From assembly GCA_964234715.1 (NCBI GenBank), contig OZ174278.1: a stretch of DNA of 64,000 nt. One strand, 5' to 3'. The translations under genes and the position numbers were made by a program. This DNA is from Podarcis melisellensis. Its lineage: Eukaryota. Position 1 is the stretch's first letter, and the number at the start of each line of letters is the position of its first letter. The notes beneath the pieces are model-generated. The model did no database searches and was not told where the DNA came from. It worked only from the letters and a program-made list of their open reading frames with translations. Below, in pieces: positions 5,358-60,889 of the stretch.

Positions 5358-5380
5358 AGTAAGGTTTCAGGTTACGTTAA

Positions 5381-5735
5381 GGGACGCGGGTGGTGCTGTG
5401 GGTTAAACCACAGAGCCTAGGACTTGCTGATCAGAAGGTTGGCGGTTCGAATCCCCACGACGGGGTGAGCTCCCGTTGTTCGGTCCCTGCTCCTGCCAAC
5501 CTAGCAGTTTGAAAGCATGTCAAAGTGCAAATAGAGAAATAGGTACTGCTCCAGCGGGAAAGTAAACGGCGTTTCCATGCGCTGCTCTGGTTCGCCAGAA
5601 GTGGCTTAGACTTGCTGGCCACATGACCCGGAAGCTTTACGCTGGCTCCCTCGGCCAATAAGGCGAGATGAGAGCTGTGACCCCAGAGTCGGTCATGACT
5701 GGACCTAATGGTCAGGGGTCCCTTTACCTTTACCT
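5381..5735 (+). mobile_element. Sauria SINE
   Basis: GGGACGCGGGTGG.GCTG head, GGTTCGAATCC B-box, (ACCTTT)n tail; TSD agtaaggtttca at 5358-5369 and 5736-5747. Confidence 0.92.
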
Positions 5736-9163: not shown

Positions 9164-9546
9164 GTGGTGCTGAAGTCTAAACCACTGAGCCTCCTGGGCT
9201 TGCCGATCAGAAAGTTGGCGGTTCGAATCCACTCGACGGTGGTGAGCTCCTGTTGCTCCGTCCTAGCTTCTGTCGACCTAGCAGTTTGAAAGCACACCAG
9301 TGAAAGTAGATAAATAGTTACCGCTGTGGCAGGAAGGTAAACAGCGTTTCAGTGCACTCTGGCACTCGTCCCAGTATCCTGTTGAACCAGAAGCAGTTTA
9401 GTCATGCTGGTCACATGACCCGGAAAGCTGTCTGGACAAATGCCTTCTCCCTCGGCCTGAAAGCGAGATGAGTGCCGCACCCCATAGTCACCTTTGATTG
9501 GACATAATCATCCAGGGGTCCTATACTCTTTACTTTTTACCTTTAC
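9164..9546 (+). mobile_element. Sauria SINE (older subfamily)
   Basis: Same head, core and tail motifs, more diverged. Confidence 0.85.
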
Positions 9547-12930: not shown

Positions 12931-14751
12931 GGATGCTGGTAAACATCTGGATGGATGTATTAACTACAAACAGATGTGTGTGTTCATGCAAGCAGAAATC
13001 TCTTGCTGGATCAGGGAGTTAATGTCTGAAAGTCTGACAATTTTGTATTGCCATCAGTTCCCCCAGCAAAGCTGCTCTTCAGTTTTTAACATCTGTTCCA
13101 ATCTGGAGATGAATTGGTCACATCTATGCCATATGTTTAAAACGCACTTGTACCACTTTAAACAGTGGTTCTTCCCTCAAAGAATTCTGGGAACTGTAGT
13201 TTGTTAAGGGTGCTGGCCTTACAGAGAGCTACAGTTCCCGGCACCCTTAACAACCTACAGTTCCCAGGGTTCTCCATGGTTGTTTAAAAATGGTATAAGA
13301 GTGCATTAAATGTGTGGTGTGGACCAGAGCCAGATTATATGAAAGCTGAACAAAAATGACAATTAAGATTGTTGCCTGTGTGTCTGAGGTGAACTTGGAC
13401 TGCAGGGAGGAGGGTCAAGGCCTCTTCCCTGAAACCATTCCCATTTACAAGTGTCTGGAACAGACTTTGCTCCCAACCTGGTGAGACTATGAGAGGGAAA
13501 CTTCAGTCTCTCCTGTATAAAATGAGTGACTGACATTCACTCTACTGGAAAACGGGAAACAAGAGAGGTGATGTCTGACACTGGAGGATCCAAAAAGCAA
13601 ACACACTTTTTAAAAACAAGCATTTTTTGCTTGTCCTTCTCCCTCAATCTAGTCAGGCCCCAGGCCGTTTTCTGATGAGGAATCCTCTGGCTGAGATATG
13701 ACAAGCAACATCACTAACATTGTTTGCCTGTTGACATCTAAAAACTATATTGGGCAAACAGTTCAGAACTAAGCATTGGTTGGTGTTCAGGTGGCTGCCT
13801 GGAATTGGCTTTCTGCCTTGCTTCCACTTGGTAGGCCAGGTTAAGAGAAGCCAAGAATAAACTATAAAAACTTTCCAGTGGTTACTTTTCCCAAAATAAC
13901 TGATGCGGTGTAGGTTAGTGACCATGTGGGTGTCAAGGAAGAAAAGATAAGTCAAAGAAAACGTCATTGACTCGTTCTCTCGCTAGCTAGTATTGCCGCC
14001 TCTTTTTAATAGAAATTACATTTGCCAATGTCTTTTCTGCCATAATGCAAAGGAAAGTTAAAAGTGCTGCTAATATGGCATTAAAACTGACCTGAAGTAA
14101 AAATTAAGTTTCCAGCCAGCCAGGGGCATTGATGGAGTAGCCTGACCCTTGATGTTTAGCATCAGGTCCTGAATCTCCTATAGATTCCACCTTTTTTAAA
14201 AGACGAAGGCTCTTCTGTCTTCTGATTTACTTGGCTTTTGGGGCAGTTGCATGCACTGCTAAGGGGAGTGCTGGTCACTCCCCAACCACCTGTATCTTCA
14301 CAGTTAGGACCAGCAGGACATAGCTGAATTCCTATAGCTGAGTTCTCCAGCGCATGGTTGGAGAAGCAGCAACTCTAATTTTGTGCTTTGCCAACTCCTT
14401 GTAGCAGCCATGTTGTGTTATGCCATGTCCCAGTGGCACACATGTTGTGACTTGCATCCCTTCATTCTCTTGGGTGGAATCTAGACCCATATAAAAATAT
14501 ATTGAATTTACCATAGCTCACCATCACCATCTAGTGCCACATTTGTATGATGTACTGTACAACACACTTAAAACGTTTTATTTGCAGATGTATAGCTAAG
14601 TCCTAAGACTTCAAAATGTGCCCACTGGTCAAAAACAGCGGGCAACTCCTGCTATACATATGTTTGTTTGGAAGTGAGCGTTCGGAGGGTTACAAACGTA
14701 GGCTTTTATCTTTCAGTTACCCATAACTTGTCAGATAGTGCAAATAAATTA

Positions 14752-14918
14752 CCATACTTTTCCGTGTATAAGACTAGGTTTTTTTACTCTAATGTTAAAA
14801 AACGGGGGTCGTCTTATACATGGATAGTGCATGGAGGGGGGAACGTTCTTAAATTTGAGTCCTCCCAACTAGGGGGGCATCTTATACACGAGGGCGTGTT
14901 AAGCACGGAAAAATACGG
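14752..14918. mobile_element. Tc2-like MITE (short)
   Basis: TA|CCATACTTTTCCGTG ... CACGGAAAAATACGG|TA. Confidence 0.75.
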
Positions 14919-17291
14919 TACTTCTGGTGGAGTATCCTATCTGTATTCAGTAGGAAATAACTGTGTATCCCTTGCTACATGTAACTGATGGAAAATGTTG
15001 CATCGCCAAGAAGGGATAATGTACTTCCCAGTTTGAAAACAACACAGCTCTTCTGCTGCTTTGGTTTCAGTGGCTGGTAGAATACTTCTTGGCAAAACTA
15101 CCCCTTTCATTCATACTTAGGTCTTCAGCAAGGGAGACTGTGCTGCTGGATAGGGAGAAGATTCTGCACAAGCGGCGTCCTAATGCTGTCCACACATGAA
15201 TTGTTCAAGGTGTTGTCTTGCTTGACACTTAAAAACGAAACGAAGCCAGCTATGGAGATTGTCAGGATGGCCAGGTTTTGCGGAATGGCAAACTCCCTTA
15301 ATCTGTCTACTTCTGAGCATTAGAGAGAGGTGCATCATGCAGCCTTTGAATTAAGAAATACATATTTTTAAAGAGTCAATCGGTGACGGGGTATTTTTAT
15401 GAGATGAGGGGAAGCTTGGTGGTGTTTGTCATAACGCTTTCACTGTGTGTGAGAGAGAGAGAACAAGAGAGAGGGAGATTCTTGGATTGGAACGGCACAC
15501 TGTGGGAGTACTCGGTCTTTAATAAAGAAATAAAATAATAATGGCTTATATCTTGAGAACTCTGTTTTACGTGCGCAACTGGAATTCCCCTCTCTCCACG
15601 GTTTCTACTACATCTCCTCTTTCCTTCCCTCCAAAGCCACTCCTGGGAAGGTACCCTTCAGGACAGTGTGGGCTGCTCCATGGCTGAAGTGATGTGCTAG
15701 GCTGGGAGTGGAAGTGACCTCTCCCTTGGGTACAGTGCCTTCTGCTCGTCCAAGGGACATGAGGTCCAAGACAATATCCCTCCCATTTTATACAGCATTT
15801 CAAAAAAAGCAAGAGCTTAGAACATAGGAAGCTGCCTTAATACTGGGTCACACCATCAGTTTATCATCAGACTCAGTATTATCTACCTTCACTCCAGATA
15901 GGGGACATTCCCAGCCCTACATAGAGATGTTGGGGGTGGAATACAGAAGCCCTCTGCATGTAAAGCAGATGCTCTGTAGGCTCACCATTGAAAGAATAAC
16001 TGAAGAAGAGGAGTATATTTCAAAGGGGTAGAGGATTAAGGGACTATGGAGGAAACAGTCTTCGGGGGGGGGGGAGCAAGGTCTTCAGTTGCTAATTATT
16101 ATTACTATTATTAATTTTAATTTATTATTATAAAAATAATTCAACATTAATACATACATGTTACGAATATACAAACATACATTTCATACAATCCTTAAAA
16201 ATATTCATACATACCCACAAATACTTCATTTTCCCACCACCACCCCTCACCCCACCCTTGTGATGAACTTCCAATCTACTCAGTTGCAATTTCTTTCCAC
16301 TTCTATTACTTTCTTTCACACACTTTTAAACCAATTTTCTGCTTCTGTTTCTGTTACACAATGTGATGTGTAATGTGCTTCAGTTGCTAATTAAATCTAT
16401 AAAGATGAGGATGCCCATATGCTGAGAGGCAGGCGAGGCCATAGGAATGGAGTGGAAAGTGTGAAAGGATGGAGCCAGAAGGGAGAGAAAATCTTCCTTT
16501 AATCACTTGCAGTCCATTTGCATTTTGCCCATAAAACGCCCTTCCTGTGAGTGAGGAGTAATGCTTCAGTATCTTTGCCATGTGCATCAGTCCAAATGCA
16601 TGCACCATTTCCAGGCTATGCAGCGCTGGCAATGCCAAATATATTACATTAATATGTGAAACTCCTTTTGAAAGTGTAACCATTTTTTCTTGCTGTTCCC
16701 CACCCCCATGCAGTCGGAGTTTCTTACCCTCTTTTGTGCATCACTGTGAGGCTGCCTTTTCTAATTTCCTTCCTCTTTATAACTGTTACTCACTATCTTT
16801 TCCGCTAAATCTCCACCTCTTCTGTCCCCTGGTGATGATTACTTGTCAGCTCTTATTCCCGTATCATGCAACGTGGTGCCCCAAAGTGATCTGCAGAGCC
16901 GACCCAAGTCATTTTGCTGCCTGAGGCTAAGGGTAGAATGGCAACCTCCCTTGCCCCATTCCGTATACAGATATTGACTGGGCTTATGGTTATATCTTTC
17001 TTCAGCACTGATAATAGGATATCATTCACTGGTGCACCTGAGGGGCAGCAGGCTAGCTTCGGAGGCAAGCGCAATGTAAGTTGTGTGGACCCACACAGCA
17101 ATATCCTTCAGCTGATGATCATGGCTGGTCCTCAAGAGGAACGGCCACAGGACTGACATGACCCGTCGTTATCTACTGCCTGAGACAGTTGCCTCATTTT
17201 GCCCAATGGTTGTGTTGTCCTTGGTGGTCTGTAGGGATTGTGAGGTAGTGTGGAAATGAAGTTTTGTAATAAAAAAGTATAAAATAAAAAA

Positions 17292-17620
17292 GGGACGCGG
17301 GTGGCGCTGTGGGTTAAACCACAGAGCCTAGGACTTGCCGATCAGAAGGTCGGCTGTTCAAATCCCTGCAACAGGGTGAGCTCCCGTTGCTCGGTCCCTG
17401 CTCCTGCCAACCTAGCAGTTCGAAAGCACGTCAAAGTGCAGGTAGATAAATAGGTACCGCTCTGGCTGGAAGGTAACCAGAAGCGGCTTAGTCATGCTGG
17501 CCACATGACCCAGAAACTGTACGCCAGCTCCCTCGGCCAATAAAGCGAGATGAGCGCCGCAGCCCCAGAGTCGGTCATGACTGGACCTAATGGTTAGGGG
17601 TCCCTTTACCTTTACCTTTA
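17292..17620 (+). mobile_element. Sauria SINE with internal deletion
   Basis: Near-identical to 5381-5735. Confidence 0.92.
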
Positions 17621-22975: not shown

Positions 22976-25661
22976 TACTTCATTATGATAATTTAAGTCA
23001 TAACTTCCTGATTGTCTGCAAAAGAAAAACTAAAGAAAAACTCTTTTATTTGCAAACATGCTTGTATTATTTCCACCAGTTATGCCTTGGTAGTTTACAC
23101 TGGTTATTTAATTTCTATACAACTTTATATTTAAAAAATCTCTAAGCAGTGTACAAAAAACTGAAGCAGCAACAGACAACTTAAACAAAAAATTACCAAA
23201 AAAACCCACAGCTACATATAAAAATGTTACAGTAATACAAAGTTATATATGTATCAGATCATTTTCCTTCTGACACACCCTCACTCTCAGCCTCCTGGTT
23301 TCTCACCAGGCAGGGTCCAAACAAACACTCAGCTCACTCACAAAAGTCTCACAACAAGAAGAGTGCCTGGAAACAGCAGACATCGTGCTTAGTCTCTAGA
23401 CTTGCTTTTTATGGGCAGGCCCAAGGTGGGTGGTACATCCTCAGGCTGCCCACAACAATGTCCCATTCGGCTGCTCTCTCCACACCCAGTTCCCAGTCCA
23501 GTAGGCTTGTTGGGTTTCCCAGGAGGTCCAGAGGATGGGAAGAGGGACCCCCTCCACTCACAGCTCTTTCTTCACTCCCTGTCCTTTCCTCCACCTCCAG
23601 CTGCTTTCCATATTGCATCATATTTTTAAAATTTTGTACTGCACAGATTTGTTCATGCTTTGTCATGCAGACATACCTTCCAGCTGCCCTAGGTCACCTG
23701 AGATTGTCCCAAATGTCTATTGATAATCAATCTGGCACGTTTTCCCATGCGACTCCGCTCCTTTTCTCAGAAGCTCCTTTGCCTTTTCTAATCGTAGCAG
23801 GGGGGTTGCATGGCGAGGAAAGACTGTGCAGGATTAATAGCAAGGTGAAGGCTGGGGAGAAATTAATAATAAGGATCAGAGGACTTCTAAACATGTACGG
23901 AGTTCCTGTCCTTGAAGGCAAACAGAAAACAAAACACCTGGGTACTGCTTATGGAATTGTGATAATAGATTAGGAAATTGCTTTCTGAGAAAACATGGTG
24001 TACAAATTTTGTTTCCCAGTTGGGGCATAGGTGGTTGAGGTGAGGAAGATTAGCAAAGCGTTGGAGTTTTTTCTTTCAGTGTGGTAGAGGACTTGACTTG
24101 CTCAATTGAGCCATCTGGTCTGTCTTAGTGACTCACTTGGTTTAGCAATCTTTGCAGAAAGTATTTCATTCAGTCCCATTTTCGGCTTGTGACATGTTAT
24201 CCTCTGGAATTGTGGGACCCATCCCTTACTTCTCCCCATGAATGTCACTGTTTTCATCTGTCAAATGCTGTAGGACAAGTGAAAACACGCAACGTAATGG
24301 ACACATCCAGTTCTGGTGCCATTTTAAACAGTTGCGGTTTCTCCCAAAGAATCCAGGGAACTGGGATTTAGTTGAGGGTGCCGAGAGTTTTTAGGAGACT
24401 CCTCAGAGAACAATGTTCCCTATCATTATTTGATTATTCTCTATAATATTACACAGTGTTGCCAAAAGTCTTGGTGTGGCCCTACAACTCCCATCGACCC
24501 CAGCAAGTATGGCCAGTAGAGTTCAGGGATGATGAGATGAGAACTGTAGTCGCAACAATATTTGGAAGGCAACAGGTTCCCCACTTCTGGTGTAGACAAA
24601 GGTTGATAGACCCTAGTTCTAGCAGTAGAATGTAAGAAGAACCACCTCATTGGATCTGGCCAGTTGCCCACCCGGTCTACCATCCTGTTCTCACAGTGAC
24701 CAACCAAATGCCTCTGCAGTAGCCAAAGCAGGATATAAGAGCAACAGTACTTATCCCCACTTGTGGTCCCCAGTAACTGGAATACAGGGGTGTGCTATCT
24801 CCAAAATCATGATTGGTATGATCTGCTACAAAAAACCCCACCTATTTGGGCATTTTGCTTAATGCGGGAGCAGGGATGTGCAGAGTGGATGCCCCCTGCC
24901 CAACCTTCATGGAAGGAGCATGGCAGTCTGTAATGAGAGAGACCCCACACAGAGTCTTTACTGAAGCCTCTGTTACTACAGATGGTTTCGCTCTGTGTGT
25001 GAAGGCATATCCCTACTCATGTGTTCGTCAACACGGTGTGTAAGAAGGCCCAAACAAGGGCTAAAATGGACAGTCAGTACGTTTATCACAGCTTTGCAAG
25101 AACGTTTCATTTGGTGAATGCAGGATAGCCTAGTTTAACAGAAAAGCATTTCAATACAGCATTGAATGGACAGAATTGAGGGCCTCAAACAGCTACAGCA
25201 TTGTTCAACAGTATATAGGATTGTAATTGTTTAAGGTACGACAATAGCATGTCATTGACTTTGAATTAATTGGCTCCTAAGCTCGTCTTTCACTTTTGTG
25301 TAGGCTTACAATGGCCCAGTTCAAACATCGCAGCAAAACCAATTTTGCAATTGCATAAAAAATAAAAATTAATGAGCGATTGTTCTGGCTGCAGAGAGGG
25401 AACTAGTAATTAGAGCCCCCACCCCATTGCTGCCATCGCTCTGGGGAACAGGGTCAGTTCAAGGATTTGTGGTGAGTGAACAGGAAGAATCTAATTAGCA
25501 ACTTTAAAGGAGCAAAGAGGAAGCTGCTGTCTAAGAGAAGGAAGAAGCAGGACCTTTAGAACAGAAGTTAGAATTGGGTCTTGCCAATGTGAGGTGGACA
25601 TTGTTGGATATTTATGAGGAAAATAAGGCTATATTAAATACTGTGTGGAGCCACCAATTTA

Positions 25662-27043
25662 CCGTATTTTTCGCACCATAGGACGCACCGGACCATAGGG
25701 CGCACCCAGTTTTTTGGGGGGGAAATAAAGGGGAAAAAATTATTTCCCCCCCCCCAGGCGCGGGGCTGGGGCGGGGGAAGCTCGAGCTTCCCCCGACCCC
25801 AGCCCCCAAACAGGCAGCTCTCCGCAAGCAGCGGGAGCGCTCCCGCTGCTTGCGGAGAGGTCCGCGAAGCCTGGACGCGCTGAGCTCAGCGCGCCCAGGC
25901 TTCGGCATGCAGGCACCTCTCCGCAAGCAGCGGGAGCGTTCCCGCTGCTTGCGGAGAGGTCCGCGAAGCCTGGACGCGCTGAGCTCAGCGCGCCCAGGCT
26001 TCGGCATGCAGGCACCTCTCCGCAAGCAGCAGCGGGAGCGTTCCCGCTGCTTGCGGAGAGGTCCGCGAAGCCTGGATGCGCTGAGCTCAGCACGCCCAGG
26101 CTTCGGCACGCAGGCACCTCTCCGCAAGCAGCGGGAGCGTTCCCGCTGCTTGCGGAGAGGTGCGCGAAGCCTGGACGCGCTGAGCTCAGCGCGCCCAGGC
26201 TTCGGCACGCAGGCACCTCTCCGCAAGCAGCAGCGGGAGCGTTCCCGCTGCTTGCGGAGAGGTCCGCGAAGCCTGGACGCGCTGAGCTCAGCGCGCCCAG
26301 GCTTCGGCACGCAGGCACCTCTCCGCAAGCAGCGGGAGCGTTCCCGCTGCTTGCGGAGAGGTCCGCGAAGCCTGGACGCGCTGAGCTCAGCGCGCCCAGG
26401 CTTCGGCACGCAGGCACCTCTCCGCAAGCAGCGGGAGCGTTCCCGCTGCTTGCGGAGAGGTCCGCGAAGCCTGGACGCGCTGAGCTCAGCGCGCCCAGGC
26501 TTCGGCACGCAGGCACCTCTCCGCAAGCAGCGGGAGCGTTCCCGCTGCTTGCGGAGAGGTCCGCGAAGCCTGGACGCGCTGAGCTCAGCGCGCCCAGGCT
26601 TCGGCACGCAGGCACCTCTCCGCAAGCAGCGGGAGCGTTCCCGCTGCTTGCGGAGAGGTCCGCGAAGCCTGGACGCGCTGAGCTCAGCGCGCCCAGGCTT
26701 CGGCATGCAGGCACCTCTCCGCAAGCAGCAGCGGGAGCGTTCCCGCTGCTTGCGGAGAGGTCCGCTGCTTGCGGAGAGGTCCGCGAAGCCTGGACGCGCT
26801 GAGCTCAGCGCGCCCAGGCTTCGGCATGCAGGCAACTCTCCGCAAGCAGTGGGAGCCCAGCGCTGGGCTCCCGCTGCTTGCGGAGAGGTGTGCGAAGCCT
26901 GGAGAGCTGAGGGGTCGGTGCGCACCGACCCCTCTCACTCTCCAGGCTTCAGCGAAAGCCTGCATTCGCACCATAGGACGCACACACATTTCCCCTTCAT
27001 TTTTGGAGGGGAAAAAGTGCGTCCTATGGTGCGAAAAATACGG
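25662..27043. mobile_element. Non-autonomous Tc2-like (Tc1/mariner superfamily) DNA transposon carrying a hairpin tandem array
   Basis: TA|CCGTATTTTTCGCACCATAGGACGCAC ... GTGCGTCCTATGGTGCGAAAAATACGG|TA perfect TIRs with TA TSD. Confidence 0.88.
25818..26890. repeat. ~99-bp tandem repeat, 10 units plus a partial one, each built from two palindromes
   Basis: Unit ctctccgcaagcagcgggagcgttcccgctgcttgcggagag-gtccgc-gaagcctggacgcgctgagctcagcgcgcccaggcttc-ggcacgcaggcac; units start at 25818, 25917, 26016 and so on. Confidence 0.97.
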
Positions 27044-27201
27044 TAAATCTGTTTCTGGGTTATTGTGGAAAAGCAGTGACTTAGCACAGCAGTTCCAAAA
27101 CCTTTCTCCCTACCCAGGAGTTTTGAAAATGGCTGAGGGTCTTGGTAGACCATTTAAGGCCCCCCCTGCATATTGTAGCAATTGTAATGCACTGTGCTAT
27201 A

Positions 27202-27461
27202 CAGTCATACCTTATGTTACGTCCGCTTCATGTTACGTTCTTTCAGGTTACATCCCGCGGTGATCCGGAAGTACCGGAAAGGGTTACTTCCGGGTTTCGC
27301 CACTCGCGCATGTGCAGAAGCGCAAAATGACATCACACGCATGCACAAAAGCGGGGAATCACAACCCGCGCACATGCAGACGCGCCACTGTGGGTTGCGT
27401 TCTTTTCATGTTGCGAACGGGCCTCCGGAACGGATCCCGTTCGCAACCAGCAGTATCACTG
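27202..27461. mobile_element. Tigger-like MITE
   Basis: TA|CAGTCATACCT ... CAGTATCACTG|TA, degenerate TIRs. Confidence 0.7.
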
Positions 27462-27710
27462 TATACTGTATGGTTTCTAACTGCATTTTTATTTTTTGAG
27501 AGAGTTGGACTTGTCCTAAAAAAGTTAATGAACCACTGACAGAGGGCTCTGTCTTCCAGATAAATAGTGACCATCCTTATTTCATACATTGTGATGCATC
27601 AATATATTGTGATGTTGAAAACCAGATATGGCCCGACCCTAGAACCTGGAGGCAGTACTGCAGCAAATTTGCTCAAGAGTACCCATGTATTACTTATATA
27701 TGTTCTAAGG

Positions 27711-33560: not shown

Positions 33561-33612
33561 TGTGATGTAACACAGCTATTGCATATATTTATATATTTAT
33601 ATACTTATATTT

Positions 33613-33968
33613 GGGACACGGGTGGCGCTGTGGGTCAAACCACAGAGCCTAGGAATTGCTGATTAGAAGGTCGGCGGTTCGAATCCCTGTGACGGGGTGA
33701 GCTCCCGTTGCTCGGTCCCAGCTCCTGCCAACCTAGCAGTTCGAAAGCACATCAAGTGCAAGTAGATAAATAGGTACCGCTCCAGCGGGAAGGTAAACGG
33801 CGTTTCTGTGCGCTGCTCTGGTTCGCCAGAAGCGGCTTAGTCATGCTGGCCGCATGACCCGGAAGCTGTACGCCGGCTCCCTCAGCCAATAAAGCAAGAT
33901 GAGCGCCACGACCCCAGAGTCTGTCACGAATGGACCTAATGGTCAGGGGCCCCTTTACCCTTTACCTT
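33613..33968 (+). mobile_element. Sauria SINE
   Basis: Full length; tatacttatattt duplicated on both sides. Confidence 0.92.
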
Positions 33969-48388: not shown

Positions 48389-48998
48389 TATTGGTTAATC
48401 TTTACTATTGTTTAAATAAGCCAGCTTGAAAACATAGTTTATTCATTTGGCTCGTTTCAACAAACGCTAAAGATAAACCATCATGTAAGGGTTGGACGGT
48501 ACACTAAACTGGTTAATCTAAAAGGGAGGTGGAAGCTTCAGATCTTCCTAAAGCTGTGGCAGAAGAATGGAGCAGTTGAGTTTGAGGCTCATTGTTAGTA
48601 TAAAACATGGTCTGAACATAGTCAACGTGTGTGACACTGCCTGCTTGTCTGGAGCAAAACCATGTAGTACTTTGTGCAAATTCTTTGACTGCAGCCGAGA
48701 ATCAAGACGCTTCCTAAATGGGTGTTTTTCATTGACATAGGCAGCTTCAGGTTATGTAGATTAGACCATAGCCCTCTTCTGGCATTTCAGCCTGGACACA
48801 TAAGGGGAAAACACCTACGAAGGGATCATAAGGGGGGAGAAGGTGAGTGGCACCAGACGTGTCTGCTCCACCCTCAACCTTCATATTTTTAGGTTAAAAG
48901 TCTGAAGCAGGCTTGTGTGTTTTTCTGAATGTGCTTGCAGGCCTCCTCATAATTGTGAACCCTGATAAACTATTATCATTTTGAAAGCTTCTAAAATA

Positions 48999-49167
48999 CC
49001 GTATTTTTCGCTCTATAACACACACCCGACCATAACACGCACGTAGTTTTTAGAGGAGGAAAATCTGTAGGCATGCCACCCGTAGGCATTTCCTCCATAA
49101 CACGTACAGACATTTCCCCTTACTTTCTGGGAGGAAAAAAGTGAGTGTTATGGTGCAAAAAATACGG
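48999..49167. mobile_element. Tc2-like MITE (short, array-less relative of 25662-27043)
   Basis: TA|CCGTATTTTTCGC ... GGTGCAAAAAATACGG|TA; shares the gaccata and catttcccct subterminal motifs. Confidence 0.8.
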
Positions 49168-49440
49168 TATATGGTGAGGTCTGCTGAAGCAAATGGTCGC
49201 CTGTTAAAATGGTAAATTAATTCTTCTTTAACGCTACCATTAAAATCATTTGAGCCTTTGCTGTTAAAATCAGCATTTAAACGAACCTACTTTGGAACCT
49301 ATTTCAGATTGTGTTTTGTTTTCATTCTGCCTTAGCCTGCTGTCATAAGGGCTGCAAGTGAAGACGACGCTCTATTTTGGTCCTTCATCAAGGCTTTGCT
49401 GTGATCAAACAGTGAAAAGAGGCGTCTTCCCCATGACAAC

Positions 49441-55721: not shown

Positions 55722-56933
55722 ACAAGCAGTACTAGCAGAGTTGCAGCATAAAGTTTTTGAGGCAAAATGTCTTGCAAGGTTTCCCCCCAAAAACATCACT
55801 GGAAGCAAAAGTTAGTTTTCAGGAGCAACCATTGATATGTTGTGTGATCTAGAGAAAGCGTGTTTGTGTGTTGCTTAAGTGCTTCTCTGCATGCACAGGG
55901 AGGCATGCCGTTTTTTGCTCACAGTTGCAGTGCCATGTGTCGTATGAAACACGTCTCTGGAAGGGCTTCTGTTAGCAGCACATGGCAGCCCACATTCACA
56001 AAGAGCTGCAGGAGGAGGAAGGGAAGTCCTTAGAGCAGCCTTACCTAAACTGGTTTTGGACTACAATGCCCATTAGTCCCAGTTAGCAGGTCAGTAGTTG
56101 AGGATTAGCATTTGGAGGGCACCAGATTAGGGAAGGCTGCCCTAGTGAATGCGCATAAACCTTTGGATCTCGGCCACCGTTGTATCACTGGCTGAAGACA
56201 GAGGCAGCTCACAGCACTGGGAAGACACTTCCAACTCTCTTCTAGAAAGATATATCCACAGCTGTTTCTGTTGTAACCAGCAGATGGAATGCTGATAAAT
56301 CTTTTTGTGCCTCTCCCTGCTTGTTTTGTTTCCCAGCCATAGGAGGAGGCAAACTGCCCTGCAGCCCAGCTGCCTAAGATAGGCAAAGGGTTGTGCTGTG
56401 AGCTCCCTTTCCATATCACATCTGTCTTCAGTCATGTTTCGTCAGCTGCGGATGCACTTGTAAGAATGATGCAACAAAATAATTGTGTGTGTGTCCAAAT
56501 AATTGTGTACTCCATTGAGACTCTTTTCTATATAACTTCGTCATGTGAACTCATTCTGAGTGGCTTGCTGCAGAGTGGCAAACTAAACAGAATTGCTTAT
56601 TTTTCAGTGTTTGTTGGACACAGAGCATTACTCATCCAGACTCTTATCTAGCATCATCTATGCTGTTGCTAATAAAGGCTTCCTTTCACCAATATCTATG
56701 ATTATGGTAGCACTCTCCTTGGACATCAGTGCTGGGAAGCTAAGACACTACTTGGAAACGAACAGCCACACAATTTATGTGATTGTGTGCAGGAGAAAAG
56801 TCCAGGCCACGTCACGTGGATGAGGCTTGGATTGTGGGATCAGGATTGCCTGCAAAAGTGTGGTCCCGATAAAGCTCATTATGAAGCTGTTGGGCATCTG
56901 CGTTGTAACCCAAATATACATGTCTATGACTAA

Positions 56934-57274
56934 GGGACGCGGGTGGCGCTGTGGGTTAAACCACAGAGCCTAGGACTTGCCGATCAGAAGGTTGCCGGTT
57001 CGAATCCCCGCGATGGGGGGAGCTCCCGTTGCTCGGTCCCTGCTCCTGCCAACCTAGCAGTTCGAAAGCACGTCAAAGTGCAAGTAGATAAATAGGTACC
57101 GCTCCGGTGAGAAGGTGCACTGCTCTGGTTCGCCAGAAGTGGCTTAGTCATGCTGGCCACATGACCTGGAAGCTGTACGCCAGCTCCCTCGGCCAATAAA
57201 GCGAGATGAGCACCGCAACCCCCAGAGTCGGCCACGACTGGACCTAATGGTCAGGGGTCCCTTTACCTTACCTT
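56934..57274 (+). mobile_element. Sauria SINE
   Basis: Full length, same family. Confidence 0.92.
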
Positions 57275-58770: not shown

Positions 58771-60889
58771 CAGTGGTGCCCCGCTAGACGAATGCCTCGC
58801 AAGACGAAAAACCCGCAAGACGAAAGGGTTTTTCGGTTTTTGCGACGCTTCGCTAGACGATTTTCCCTATGGGCTTGCATCGCAAGACGAAAGCCCATAG
58901 GGAAATCTCGGGGACCTTTTTTTAAATGCTGGCGGTGGGGAGCAAAGCCTTCCCCCCCCTCCGGACTTCAGAAGAGGTCCAGGAAGGCCGGCGGGGGCGA
59001 AAGGCTTTGCTCCCCACCGCCAGCATTTTAAAAGCGGTCCGGGATAGCAGGGAAGCGCTTCCCGCTATCCCGGACGGCTTTTGAAGGCAGGCAGGGGGGG
59101 CAAAGACTTTTGCCCCCCGCCCGCCTTGGGAAGAGGTCCTGGACCTCTTCCCAAGGCGGGCGGGGGGCAAAAGTCTTTGCCCCCCCTGCCTGCCTAACCG
59201 GGGGCTTTTAAATCCCGGGAGAGCGGGAAGGCAGCGCTGTCTTTTCCGCTCTCCCGGAAAGGCAGGCAGGGGGGAGCAAAGACTTTTGCCCCCCGCCCGC
59301 CTTCGGAAGAGGGCCAGGACCTCTTCCCAAGGCGGGCGGGGGGCAAAAGTCTTTGCCCCCCCTGCCTGCCTAACCGGGGGCTTTTAAATCGCCCCGGGAC
59401 TGTCCGGGGCGATTTAAAAGCCCCCGGACGGCTTTTGAAGCCTCCCCCCCCGCCCGGCTTCGGGGCATCATCCCGATGCCGGGCGGTGGGGCAGGAACGC
59501 CTCCCCCAGCCGCCCGGCTTCGGGGCATCGTCCCGATGCCGGGCGGTGGGGCAGGAACGCCTCCCCCAGCCGCCCGGCTTCGGGGCATCGTCCCGATGCC
59601 GGGCGGTGGGGCAGGAACGCCTCCCCCAGCCGCCCGGCTTCGGGGCATCGTCCCGATGCCGGGCGGTGGGGCAGGAAAGCCTCCCCCAGCCGCCCGGCAT
59701 CGGAACGATGTCCCGAAGCCGGGCGGCCGGGCGGGAAAGCCTCCCCCCCCCCCGCCCGGCTTCGGGGCATCGTCCCGATGCCGGGCGGTGGGGCAGGAAC
59801 GCCTCCCCCAGCCGCCCGGCTTCGGGGCATCGTCCCGATGCCGGGCGGTGGGGCAGGAACGCCTCCCCCAGCCGCCCGGCTTCGGGGCGTCGTCCCGATG
59901 CCGGGCGGTGGGGCAGGAACGCCTCCCCCAGCCGCCCGGTTTCGGGGCGTCGTCCCGATGCCGGGCGGTGGGGCAGGAACGCCTCCCCCAGCCGCCCGGC
60001 TTCGGGGCATCTTCCCGATGCCGGGCGGTGGGGCAGGAACGCCTCCCCCAGCCGCCCGGCTTCGGGGCATCGTCCCGATGCCGGGCGGTGGGGCAGGAAA
60101 GCCTCCCCCAGCCGCCCGGCATCGGAACGATGTCCCGAAGCCGGGCGGCCGGGCGGGAAAGCCTCCCCCCCCCGCCCGGCTTCGGGGCATCGTCCCGATG
60201 CCGGGCGGTGGGGCAGGAACGCCTCCCCCAGCCGCCCGGCATCGGGGCATCGTCCCGATGCCGGGCGGTGGGGCAGGAACGCCTCCCCCAGCCGCCCGGC
60301 TTCGGGGCATCGTCCCGATGCCGGGCGGTGGGGCAGGAAAGCCTCCCCCAGCCGCCCGGCATCGGAACGATGTCCCGAAGCCGGGCGGCCGGGCGGGAAA
60401 GCCTCCCCCCCCCGCCCGGCTTCGGGGCATCGTCCCGATGCCGGGCGGTGGGGCAGGAAAGCCTCCCCCAGCCGCCCGGCATCGGGGCATCGTCCCGATG
60501 CCGGGCGGTGGGGCAGGAACGCCTCCCCCAGCCGCCCGGCATCGGGGCATCGTCCCGATGCCGGGCGGTGGGGCAGGAAAGCCTCCCCCAGCCGCCCGGC
60601 ATCGGAACGATGTCCCGAAGCCGGGCGGCCGGGCGGGAAAGCCTTTGTCCCCCCTGCCTGCCTTCCCAGGGGCTTTTAAATCGCCCCGGACAGCGGAGAA
60701 GTCCTCCGCTGTCCCGGGCGATTTTAAAATGCCGCCCGCCAGAAGAGGTCGGGGGAAGGCTTTTTCCATAGGAACGCATTAATTGATTTTCAATGCATTC
60801 CTATGGAAAACCGTGCATCGCAAGACGAAAAACTCGCAAGACGAAGAGACTTGCGGAACGAATTAATTTCGTCTTGCGAGGCACCACTG
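58771..60889. mobile_element. Non-autonomous Tigger/pogo-like DNA transposon with a palindrome-rich interior and a 60-bp array, in the intron between coding exons 8 and 9
   Basis: TA|CAGTGGTGCCCCGCTAGACGAAT ... ATTTCGTCTTGCGAGGCACCACTG|TA TIRs, TA TSD, repeated subterminal CGCAAGACGA motifs. Confidence 0.88.
59451..60644. repeat. 60-bp GC-rich minisatellite, 20 units, with higher-order structure
   Basis: Unit cgcccggcttcggggcatcgtcccgatgccgggcggtggggcaggaacgcctcccccagc aligns row by row in the 60-nt display. Confidence 0.97.

Follow-up and report, generated by a model that had tools for sequence, protein, structure and literature searches.

A stretch of 64,000 nucleotides from contig OZ174278.1 of Podarcis melisellensis, referred to here as the window, contains a TA-flanked element with terminal inverted repeats (TIRs) whose interior holds ten tandem copies of a double hairpin. 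The locus raises two connected questions, namely whether the element is a genuine and recent transposon insertion, and whether its array of hairpins was taken up from elsewhere or grew within the element itself. The best reading of the evidence presented below, to which we assign a probability of roughly 85%, is that the element inserted very recently and belongs to a high-copy, non-autonomous TIR family of Podarcis wall lizards that targets TA (Tc1/mariner/pogo sensu lato) and that its array was amplified in place. The superfamily is putatively assigned from the TA duplication and the TIRs only.

The element measures 1,382 bp and lies between TA pairs at window positions 25660-27045. Its features are listed below in order of position, with strand given where one applies and the basis of each assignment in brackets.

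25660-25661, no strand: left copy of the TA target-site duplication (sequence; empty-site joint from 25659 to 27044 with 2-nt ambiguity in four runs)
25662-25688, plus strand: left 27-bp TIR (inverted-repeat match; the inner 17 nt, 25672-25688, are the repeated motif)
25689-25705, plus strand: second copy of the 17-nt motif in direct orientation, with 2 mismatches (position kept in the short relative)
25716-25755, no strand: G-run/C-run hairpin in the left arm (sequence and whole-element fold)
25762-25806, no strand: GC-rich palindrome centred on CTCGAG (sequence; gapless core 25768-25799, stem 16)
25810-26827, no strand: ten ~99-bp units in tandem, in each of which a 42-nt hairpin (a) is followed by a 40-nt hairpin (b) centred on GAGCTC (Tandem Repeats Finder (TRF), dissection, folding, and composition)
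26743-26784, no strand: 19-bp duplication within unit 10, with CCGC microhomology at its bounds (TRF, period 19 and 2.2 copies; unit dissection)
26828-26959, no strand: diverged 11th unit of 132 bp, read as the native module (stem comparison; array-less contig in run X1)
26967-26983, plus strand: further 17-nt motif copy, lying inward of the right TIR and inverted with respect to it (short relative arranged likewise)
26990-27014, no strand: small hairpin separating the inner motif from the right TIR (sequence and fold)
27017-27043, minus strand: right 27-bp TIR (inverted-repeat match)
27044-27045, no strand: right copy of the TA target-site duplication (sequence; contigs of many other copies diverge directly behind 27045)

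The two TIRs are complementary at 27 of 27 positions with 0 mismatches (0 matches were expected in shuffles), and at up to 3 mismatches the 27-bp TIR was matched at only two places across the whole window. The 17-nt motif occurs four times, twice in direct orientation at the left end, once in the right TIR, and once inverted to the inside of the right TIR, and the right end of the element can fold on itself through these inverted copies. The motif may represent a transposase binding site. The target duplication is a 2-bp TA at both flanks, and a single TA is retained at the empty site in the four runs described below. Duplications of 3 bp (TTA versus TAA) or 4 bp are inconsistent with the flanks of the element, from which PIF/Harbinger, piggyBac, and hAT-type duplications were also ruled out. 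A search of the element against Pfam returned no credible domain and no transposase of its own. The claim of a preliminary description of this locus, that perfect 27-bp TIRs with a TA duplication enclose ten units, was borne out by TIR matching, TRF, and unit dissection.

Contigs of four public sequencing runs were compared with positions 25000-27700 of the window. Two of these runs (X1 and X4) belong to organism A and come from different samples and studies, one (X5) belongs to organism B, and one (X11) to organism E. In all four, a contig passes straight from 25659 to 27044, leaving out 1384 nt and overlapping by 2 nt; in X4, X5, and X11 a single contig runs through both flanks across this empty site. 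The X1 contig shows 0 differences from the window over 357 nt, and the adjoining X1 flank contigs show 0-1 differences. Relatives thus lack the insertion, as does at least one allele in the run that is closest to the window. This empty site proves a real transposon insertion and fixes its boundaries and the TA independently of the inverted repeats, which upholds the earlier claim of a mobile, non-autonomous TIR element with a TA duplication. Excision was rejected as the source of the bare TA, given that a footprint-free TA common to organisms with differing flanks represents the ancestral empty state. Among the contigs listed for the four runs, none bridges a junction between flank and TIR, and the filled allele is represented by the window assembly only. 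The depth of the X1 empty-site contig (65.7, compared with 115.1 and 95.2 for the neighbouring contigs) hints at heterozygosity but is an unreliable guide to it, as there is one depth figure per contig and flank words common to both alleles should not be halved.

The insertion is very recent, because its TIRs are identical, an empty allele with identical flanks exists, and its CpGs are intact. The exact empty site in the closest genome suggests that this Podarcis family moved very recently, with the array included.

Two further observations were made around the insertion site. An unrelated TA-flanked MITE with CAGT-type termini is present at 27200-27463, 155 bp downstream of the element; each of the four runs shows a contig depth of 10^5-10^6 over it, and its left edge is a point of divergence for many contigs. 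In X1, X4, and X5, a contig at single-copy-like depth has a 21-nt match ending at 25528 and then resumes at 27199, where the downstream MITE starts; this joint may represent a paralogous or rearranged locus. Elsewhere in the window, a tRNA-related SINE-like repeat is present in five copies that are 66-96% alike (5378-5731, 9196-9358, 17289-17613, 33610-33962, and 56931-57269).

The abundance of the family was estimated from the same contigs. Depth summed over the element ends was 10^5-10^6 in all four runs versus 9-115 in single-copy flanks, which places the end bins at 10^3-10^5 times single-copy depth; summed contig depth is not a copy number, and these values are read as orders of magnitude. 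On this scale there are ~10^4 family ends per genome under all three organism labels (an order of magnitude from contig depth), and depth over the units, at about 10^3 times that of single-copy sequence, amounts in the summed array bins to ~10^3 unit-equivalents per genome at ≥90% identity. Because ~10^3 units stand against ~10^4 ends, only a small fraction of copies can have arrays. Exactly behind 27045, dozens of contigs depart from the sequence of the element and run on into unrelated DNA. The TIR and a CpG-degenerate version of it had no match in metagenome contigs. No description of the family was found in the searchable literature, where the TIR string was encountered only in two unrelated C. 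elegans papers.

Two related elements were identified within the window:

48997-49169, plus strand: old short family member of 173 bp, TA to TA, with neither hairpin modules nor array (matches the element ends only)
14750-14920: TA-flanked 171-bp MITE (sequence comparison; the first 13 nt of its termini, TACCGTATTTTTC, are those of the family)

The first of these aligns at ~79% with only two parts of the large element, its initial ~66 nt and its final ~84 nt, and has its 17-nt motifs in the same layout. A short relative without an array had been placed at 48999-49167 by the preliminary description; the relative exists, with its TA-to-TA span corrected to 48997-49169. The second has a different subterminal motif, which is repeated inside in inverted orientation, and on this comparison it is probably from a sister family that a related transposase mobilises. 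At 1,382 bp the large element exceeds the usual size of a MITE (under about 800 bp), and the basic form of the family is 173 bp.

The array was first delimited by Tandem Repeats Finder, which reported a 99-bp period, 9.6 copies, and 97% matches at 25811-26765. When the start of the first hairpin was used as the anchor, units were found to begin at 25810, 25909, 26008, 26110, 26209, 26311, 26410, 26509, 26608, and 26707; the count of ten is read from the window assembly, and the short-read contigs of the public runs collapse the array. An extra AGC is present in units 3, 5, and 10 (a unit with the AGC alone is 102 bp), and unit 10 reaches 121 bp through its extra AGC and the 19-bp duplication. 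Units 6-8 are identical to one another, unit 3 has two CpG transitions in hairpin b, unit 4 has one C>G change, and a C/T difference at the unit junction is seen in units 1, 2, 9, and 10. The AGC gains, the CCGC-bounded duplication, and the block of identical units have the appearance of ordinary slippage scars. Two palindromes per unit had been described earlier, and this was confirmed with sizes of 42 nt and 40 nt, the second being centred on GAGCTC. A single unit folded as single-stranded DNA has a predicted energy of -53.5 kcal/mol, versus -24.2 ± 2.5 for shuffles (z = -11.7). By a conservative scan, gapless hairpins occupy 69% of the interior, versus 7% in shuffles and 0-14% in other segments of the window.

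The sequence directly downstream of the array bears on where the units came from. Further palindromes had been noted at 25762-25806 and 26894-26950 on either side of the array. Both are real, although the second is part of an 11th unit that had gone unrecognised. This unit keeps to the register of the array, and its linker, the outer stems of its two hairpins, and the order of these parts are those of the array units. Its first hairpin (a') equals hairpin a of unit 1 with a symmetric central addition of 5+5 nt. Its second (b') agrees with hairpin b in the outermost ~10 bp of both arms and in the block GCTGAG, and its centre is a different 26-nt perfect palindrome. In X1, a contig goes from 25806 to 26829 across five other letters, and thus corresponds to a left arm and an 11th-type unit without the array. 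Unit number therefore varies among copies of the family, from ten in the element at 25660-27045 to none in this X1 copy. The linker between units resembles the backbone sequence of the short relative at 48997-49169. By these stem comparisons, the 99-bp unit is evidently a shortened version of a native two-hairpin module and not foreign DNA. The array evidently grew in place from that module, because the 11th unit has its stems and an array-less copy carries such a unit alone.

Since the array is open in several frames, it could also be searched for as protein. A word-indexed search gave one hit, a hypothetical protein of P. lilfordi. An exhaustive HMMER search gave 13 proteins, seven of which were taken as genuine (P0001-P0005, P0010, and P0012). 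With two further members of the cluster of P0002 (P0014 and P0015) added to the five direct hits from P. lilfordi, seven 'hypothetical predicted proteins' of this species correspond to translated 99-bp arrays with 33-aa repeats (P0001, P0002, P0003, P0005, P0012, P0014, and P0015). Their loci lie on contigs of 137, 90, 72, and 42 Mb, which are of chromosome size, and on three small scaffolds. P0001 and P0014 have about seven 33-residue repeats each; across the P. lilfordi arrays, the partial gene models take in between ~2 and 7 units. Frame +1 of the array and P0001 are 69% identical over 213 aligned residues and keep the same register, and when single units are compared by eye ~28 of 33 residues match. 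P0012 repeats the long-centre version of the first hairpin. Judged from these translations, arrays of a sister variant of the unit are apparently present at several P. lilfordi loci, and the proteins annotated there appear to be spurious gene models at no fewer than seven (at least 7) loci. In P. muralis, the C-termini of P0004 (PBXIP1) and P0010 (SUSD3) are the translated right arm of the family, that of P0004 including an 11th-unit-type second hairpin; these C-termini represent either exonised transposon copies or an annotation artefact. Palindromic or tandem interiors are therefore not peculiar to the element in the window, as the array-less X1 copy has the module and P. lilfordi has arrays. 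Because the units already differ from one another, the insertion is very young, and arrays are found at many loci, the array was probably already present when the element inserted at 25660 and was carried in by transposition.

The alternative that the array was captured, that is, that a pre-existing minisatellite, satellite, or CpG island was taken up by the transposon in a Pack-MITE-like manner or by template switching during gap repair, draws on the sharp difference in composition between the array and the AT-richer arms. We regard capture as improbable, since the diverged 11th unit ties the array to the right arm in the same register (with a' being a plus a symmetric centre), a copy with an 11th-type unit alone exists in X1, and the linker between units resembles the backbone of the short relative. 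Comparison within the 64-kb window also showed no match of the unit or interior to a host gene or to any other sequence of the window, and no long array outside a transposon shell was seen there. The term 'cargo' used in the preliminary description is consequently misleading, as the unit derives from a native module that still adjoins the array and an array-less copy exists. An even less probable explanation is that the insertion is real and the ten units are an assembly artefact, produced by over-expansion or mis-collapse of a repeat. The short-read contigs leave room for this, given that they cannot span the array, that depth in its middle bins is near zero, and that contigs pile on the first unit. 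The units nevertheless bear distinct and ordered variants (AGC, CpG changes, C>G, and the 19-bp duplication), which would be unusual for artefactual inflation, a 1-kb array is well inside long-read length, and arrays of ~7 units were assembled independently in P. lilfordi.

A third alternative is that the array, with its palindromes, is maintained by selection, whether because it works as a regulatory element or mobile CpG island or because hairpin or small RNAs arise from it. In its favour, the array is 71% G+C over 1 kb with a CpG o/e of 0.98 (versus 0.31-0.39 in the flanks and 0.38 in the window), its perfect hairpins give sub-threshold hits to generic miRNA-precursor models of Rfam, and right arms of the family lie inside two P. 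muralis gene models. The miRNA-precursor hits, however, occur on both strands, as is expected for any perfect palindrome, and none reaches a gathering score. Three other genomes lack the copy, as does one allele almost identical to the window, which leaves no conserved role for it here, and the two CpG transitions of unit 3, both in hairpin b, lie on unpaired partners and show no compensation. Selection of this kind is accordingly held to be very improbable. A structured RNA was rejected (no Rfam family at gathering score; best 82.7 bits versus 168), as was a coding repeat protein (the Pfam 'Pericardin_rpt' hit has no stretch passing alone). The four long ORFs found across both strands arise because the GC-rich repeat is stop-free and has a length that is a multiple of three, and they amount to no more than its open frames. 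Most substitutions between units are CpG transitions, in a small sample made up of the C/T difference at the unit junction in units 1, 2, 9, and 10 and the two changes in unit 3, and this pattern fits methylation-driven decay that has just begun and not protection from methylation. The barely decayed CpGs had been taken to mean an expansion that was very recent or unmethylated; recency is supported by the empty allele, the identical TIRs, and the intact CpGs, whereas an unmethylated state has no support, and the dominance of CpG transitions among unit differences points to youth and not to protection. The data show no function of the array, and we propose that it may be a by-product, moved along with the element and spreading CpG-rich hairpin minisatellites through the genome.

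Under the preferred reading of an array amplified in place, a short shell of ~173 bp would have been the starting point. By gaining GC-rich palindromic modules in a chain, one lineage would then have reached a length of ~368 bp, with a left arm, one two-hairpin module, and a right arm, and in the lineage of the element at 25660-27045 a centre-shortened module of 99 bp would subsequently have multiplied in situ until ten copies stood in tandem. Amplification would likely have proceeded by replication slippage, unequal exchange, or repeat-number change in double-strand-break repair. Hairpin-forming tandem repeats are subject to slippage, unequal exchange, and repeat-number change, and the symmetric loss or gain of centres is an expected product of hairpin or cruciform processing at unstable palindromes. 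Repeat-number change during double-strand-break repair was reportedly described in yeast by Paques, Leung and Haber in 1998. The finished element would have been cut out and pasted into a TA, presumably in trans by a transposase recognising the 27-bp TIR and the 17-nt motif (two per end), and we hypothesize that array length may be linked to the cycle of excision and gap repair.

A stronger version, in which the growth of GC-rich palindromes is a directed, transposition-coupled process in lacertid DNA transposons, appears unlikely; a candidate route for it would be fold-back or hairpin-primed synthesis combined with repeat-number change while the excision gap is repaired. If it were true, chains of hairpins would arise convergently inside unrelated MITE families (such as those at 25660-27045 and 58771-60889), wall-lizard genomes would be receiving ~10^3 CpG-island-like, cruciform-prone minisatellite units through a transposase that is still active, and symmetric gains and losses of hairpin centres would record hairpin processing in vivo.

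With in-place amplification retained as the preferred reading, the family provides a natural series that runs from the 173-bp shell through the one-module form to arrays of 2 to 10 units. This series could be used to study the birth of minisatellites inside transposons as well as the tolerance, centre-shortening, and amplification of long perfect palindromes. Cut-and-paste transposons showing present-day activity are uncommon in amniotes. Lacertid repeat libraries should include the family, because its arrays and arms have already been annotated as proteins in P. lilfordi and P. muralis.

The 'MITE-to-satellite intermediate' named in the preliminary description is an established concept, but no long array outside a transposon shell was seen for this family. 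A second element built like the one at 25660-27045 is present within the window itself. The element at 58771-60889 has a TA-flanked TIR shell, GC-rich hairpin modules, and an array of 60 bp x 20 with a CpG o/e of 0.88. Its TIRs are unrelated (they begin with CAGTGG), and no similarity to the element at 25660-27045 was detected. Membership in the Pack-MITEs, which likewise have a TIR shell and a large non-transposase interior, was rejected, since Pack-MITE interiors are host gene fragments and the lizard interior is apparently the element's own module and matches no gene. A foldback element was also rejected, as the arms are 27 bp and the interior palindromes are local and not arm-to-arm.

MITEs with internal tandem repeats and a palindrome in the repeat unit are a described kind (PMC3879986; review PMC9659126). 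The closest likeness is to the DTC84/pearl elements of bivalves, in which the palindrome in each repeat was proposed as a hotspot of array-length change (Satovic and Plohl 2013, PMC3879986). Like the lizard element, DTC84 has a non-coding, high-copy shell round a short array of core repeats that varies in copy number, with a palindrome per repeat, and its flanks act as a 'cassette' for repeats (PMC3879986), in which the two are again alike. DTC84 differs in its AA duplication, its short inverted repeats only, its linked microsatellite, and its ≤5 repeats; the lizard element, from a vertebrate host, has a TA duplication and perfect TIRs of 27 bp, and its ten units are each taken up almost entirely by two long near-perfect palindromes. 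For miDNA4 of Xenopus tropicalis (listed as Tc1-mariner) and Xmix/Xstir of X. laevis, a review describes a satellite monomer born inside a MITE and then tandemly amplified (PMC9659126). These frog elements have no sequence relation to the lizard element, and according to the same review their repeats also form satellite DNA arrays (PMC9659126). The lizard family is set apart from known tandem-repeat MITEs by its shell of TA and 27-bp TIRs, its two-palindrome units, and its CpG-island-like composition. The element is a well-documented example of the class of tandem-repeat-carrying MITEs and not a new kind of system; what is new is the exact empty site found in X1, X4, X5, and X11, the array-less variant and native 11th unit that explain the origin of the array, and the mis-annotated Podarcis proteins.
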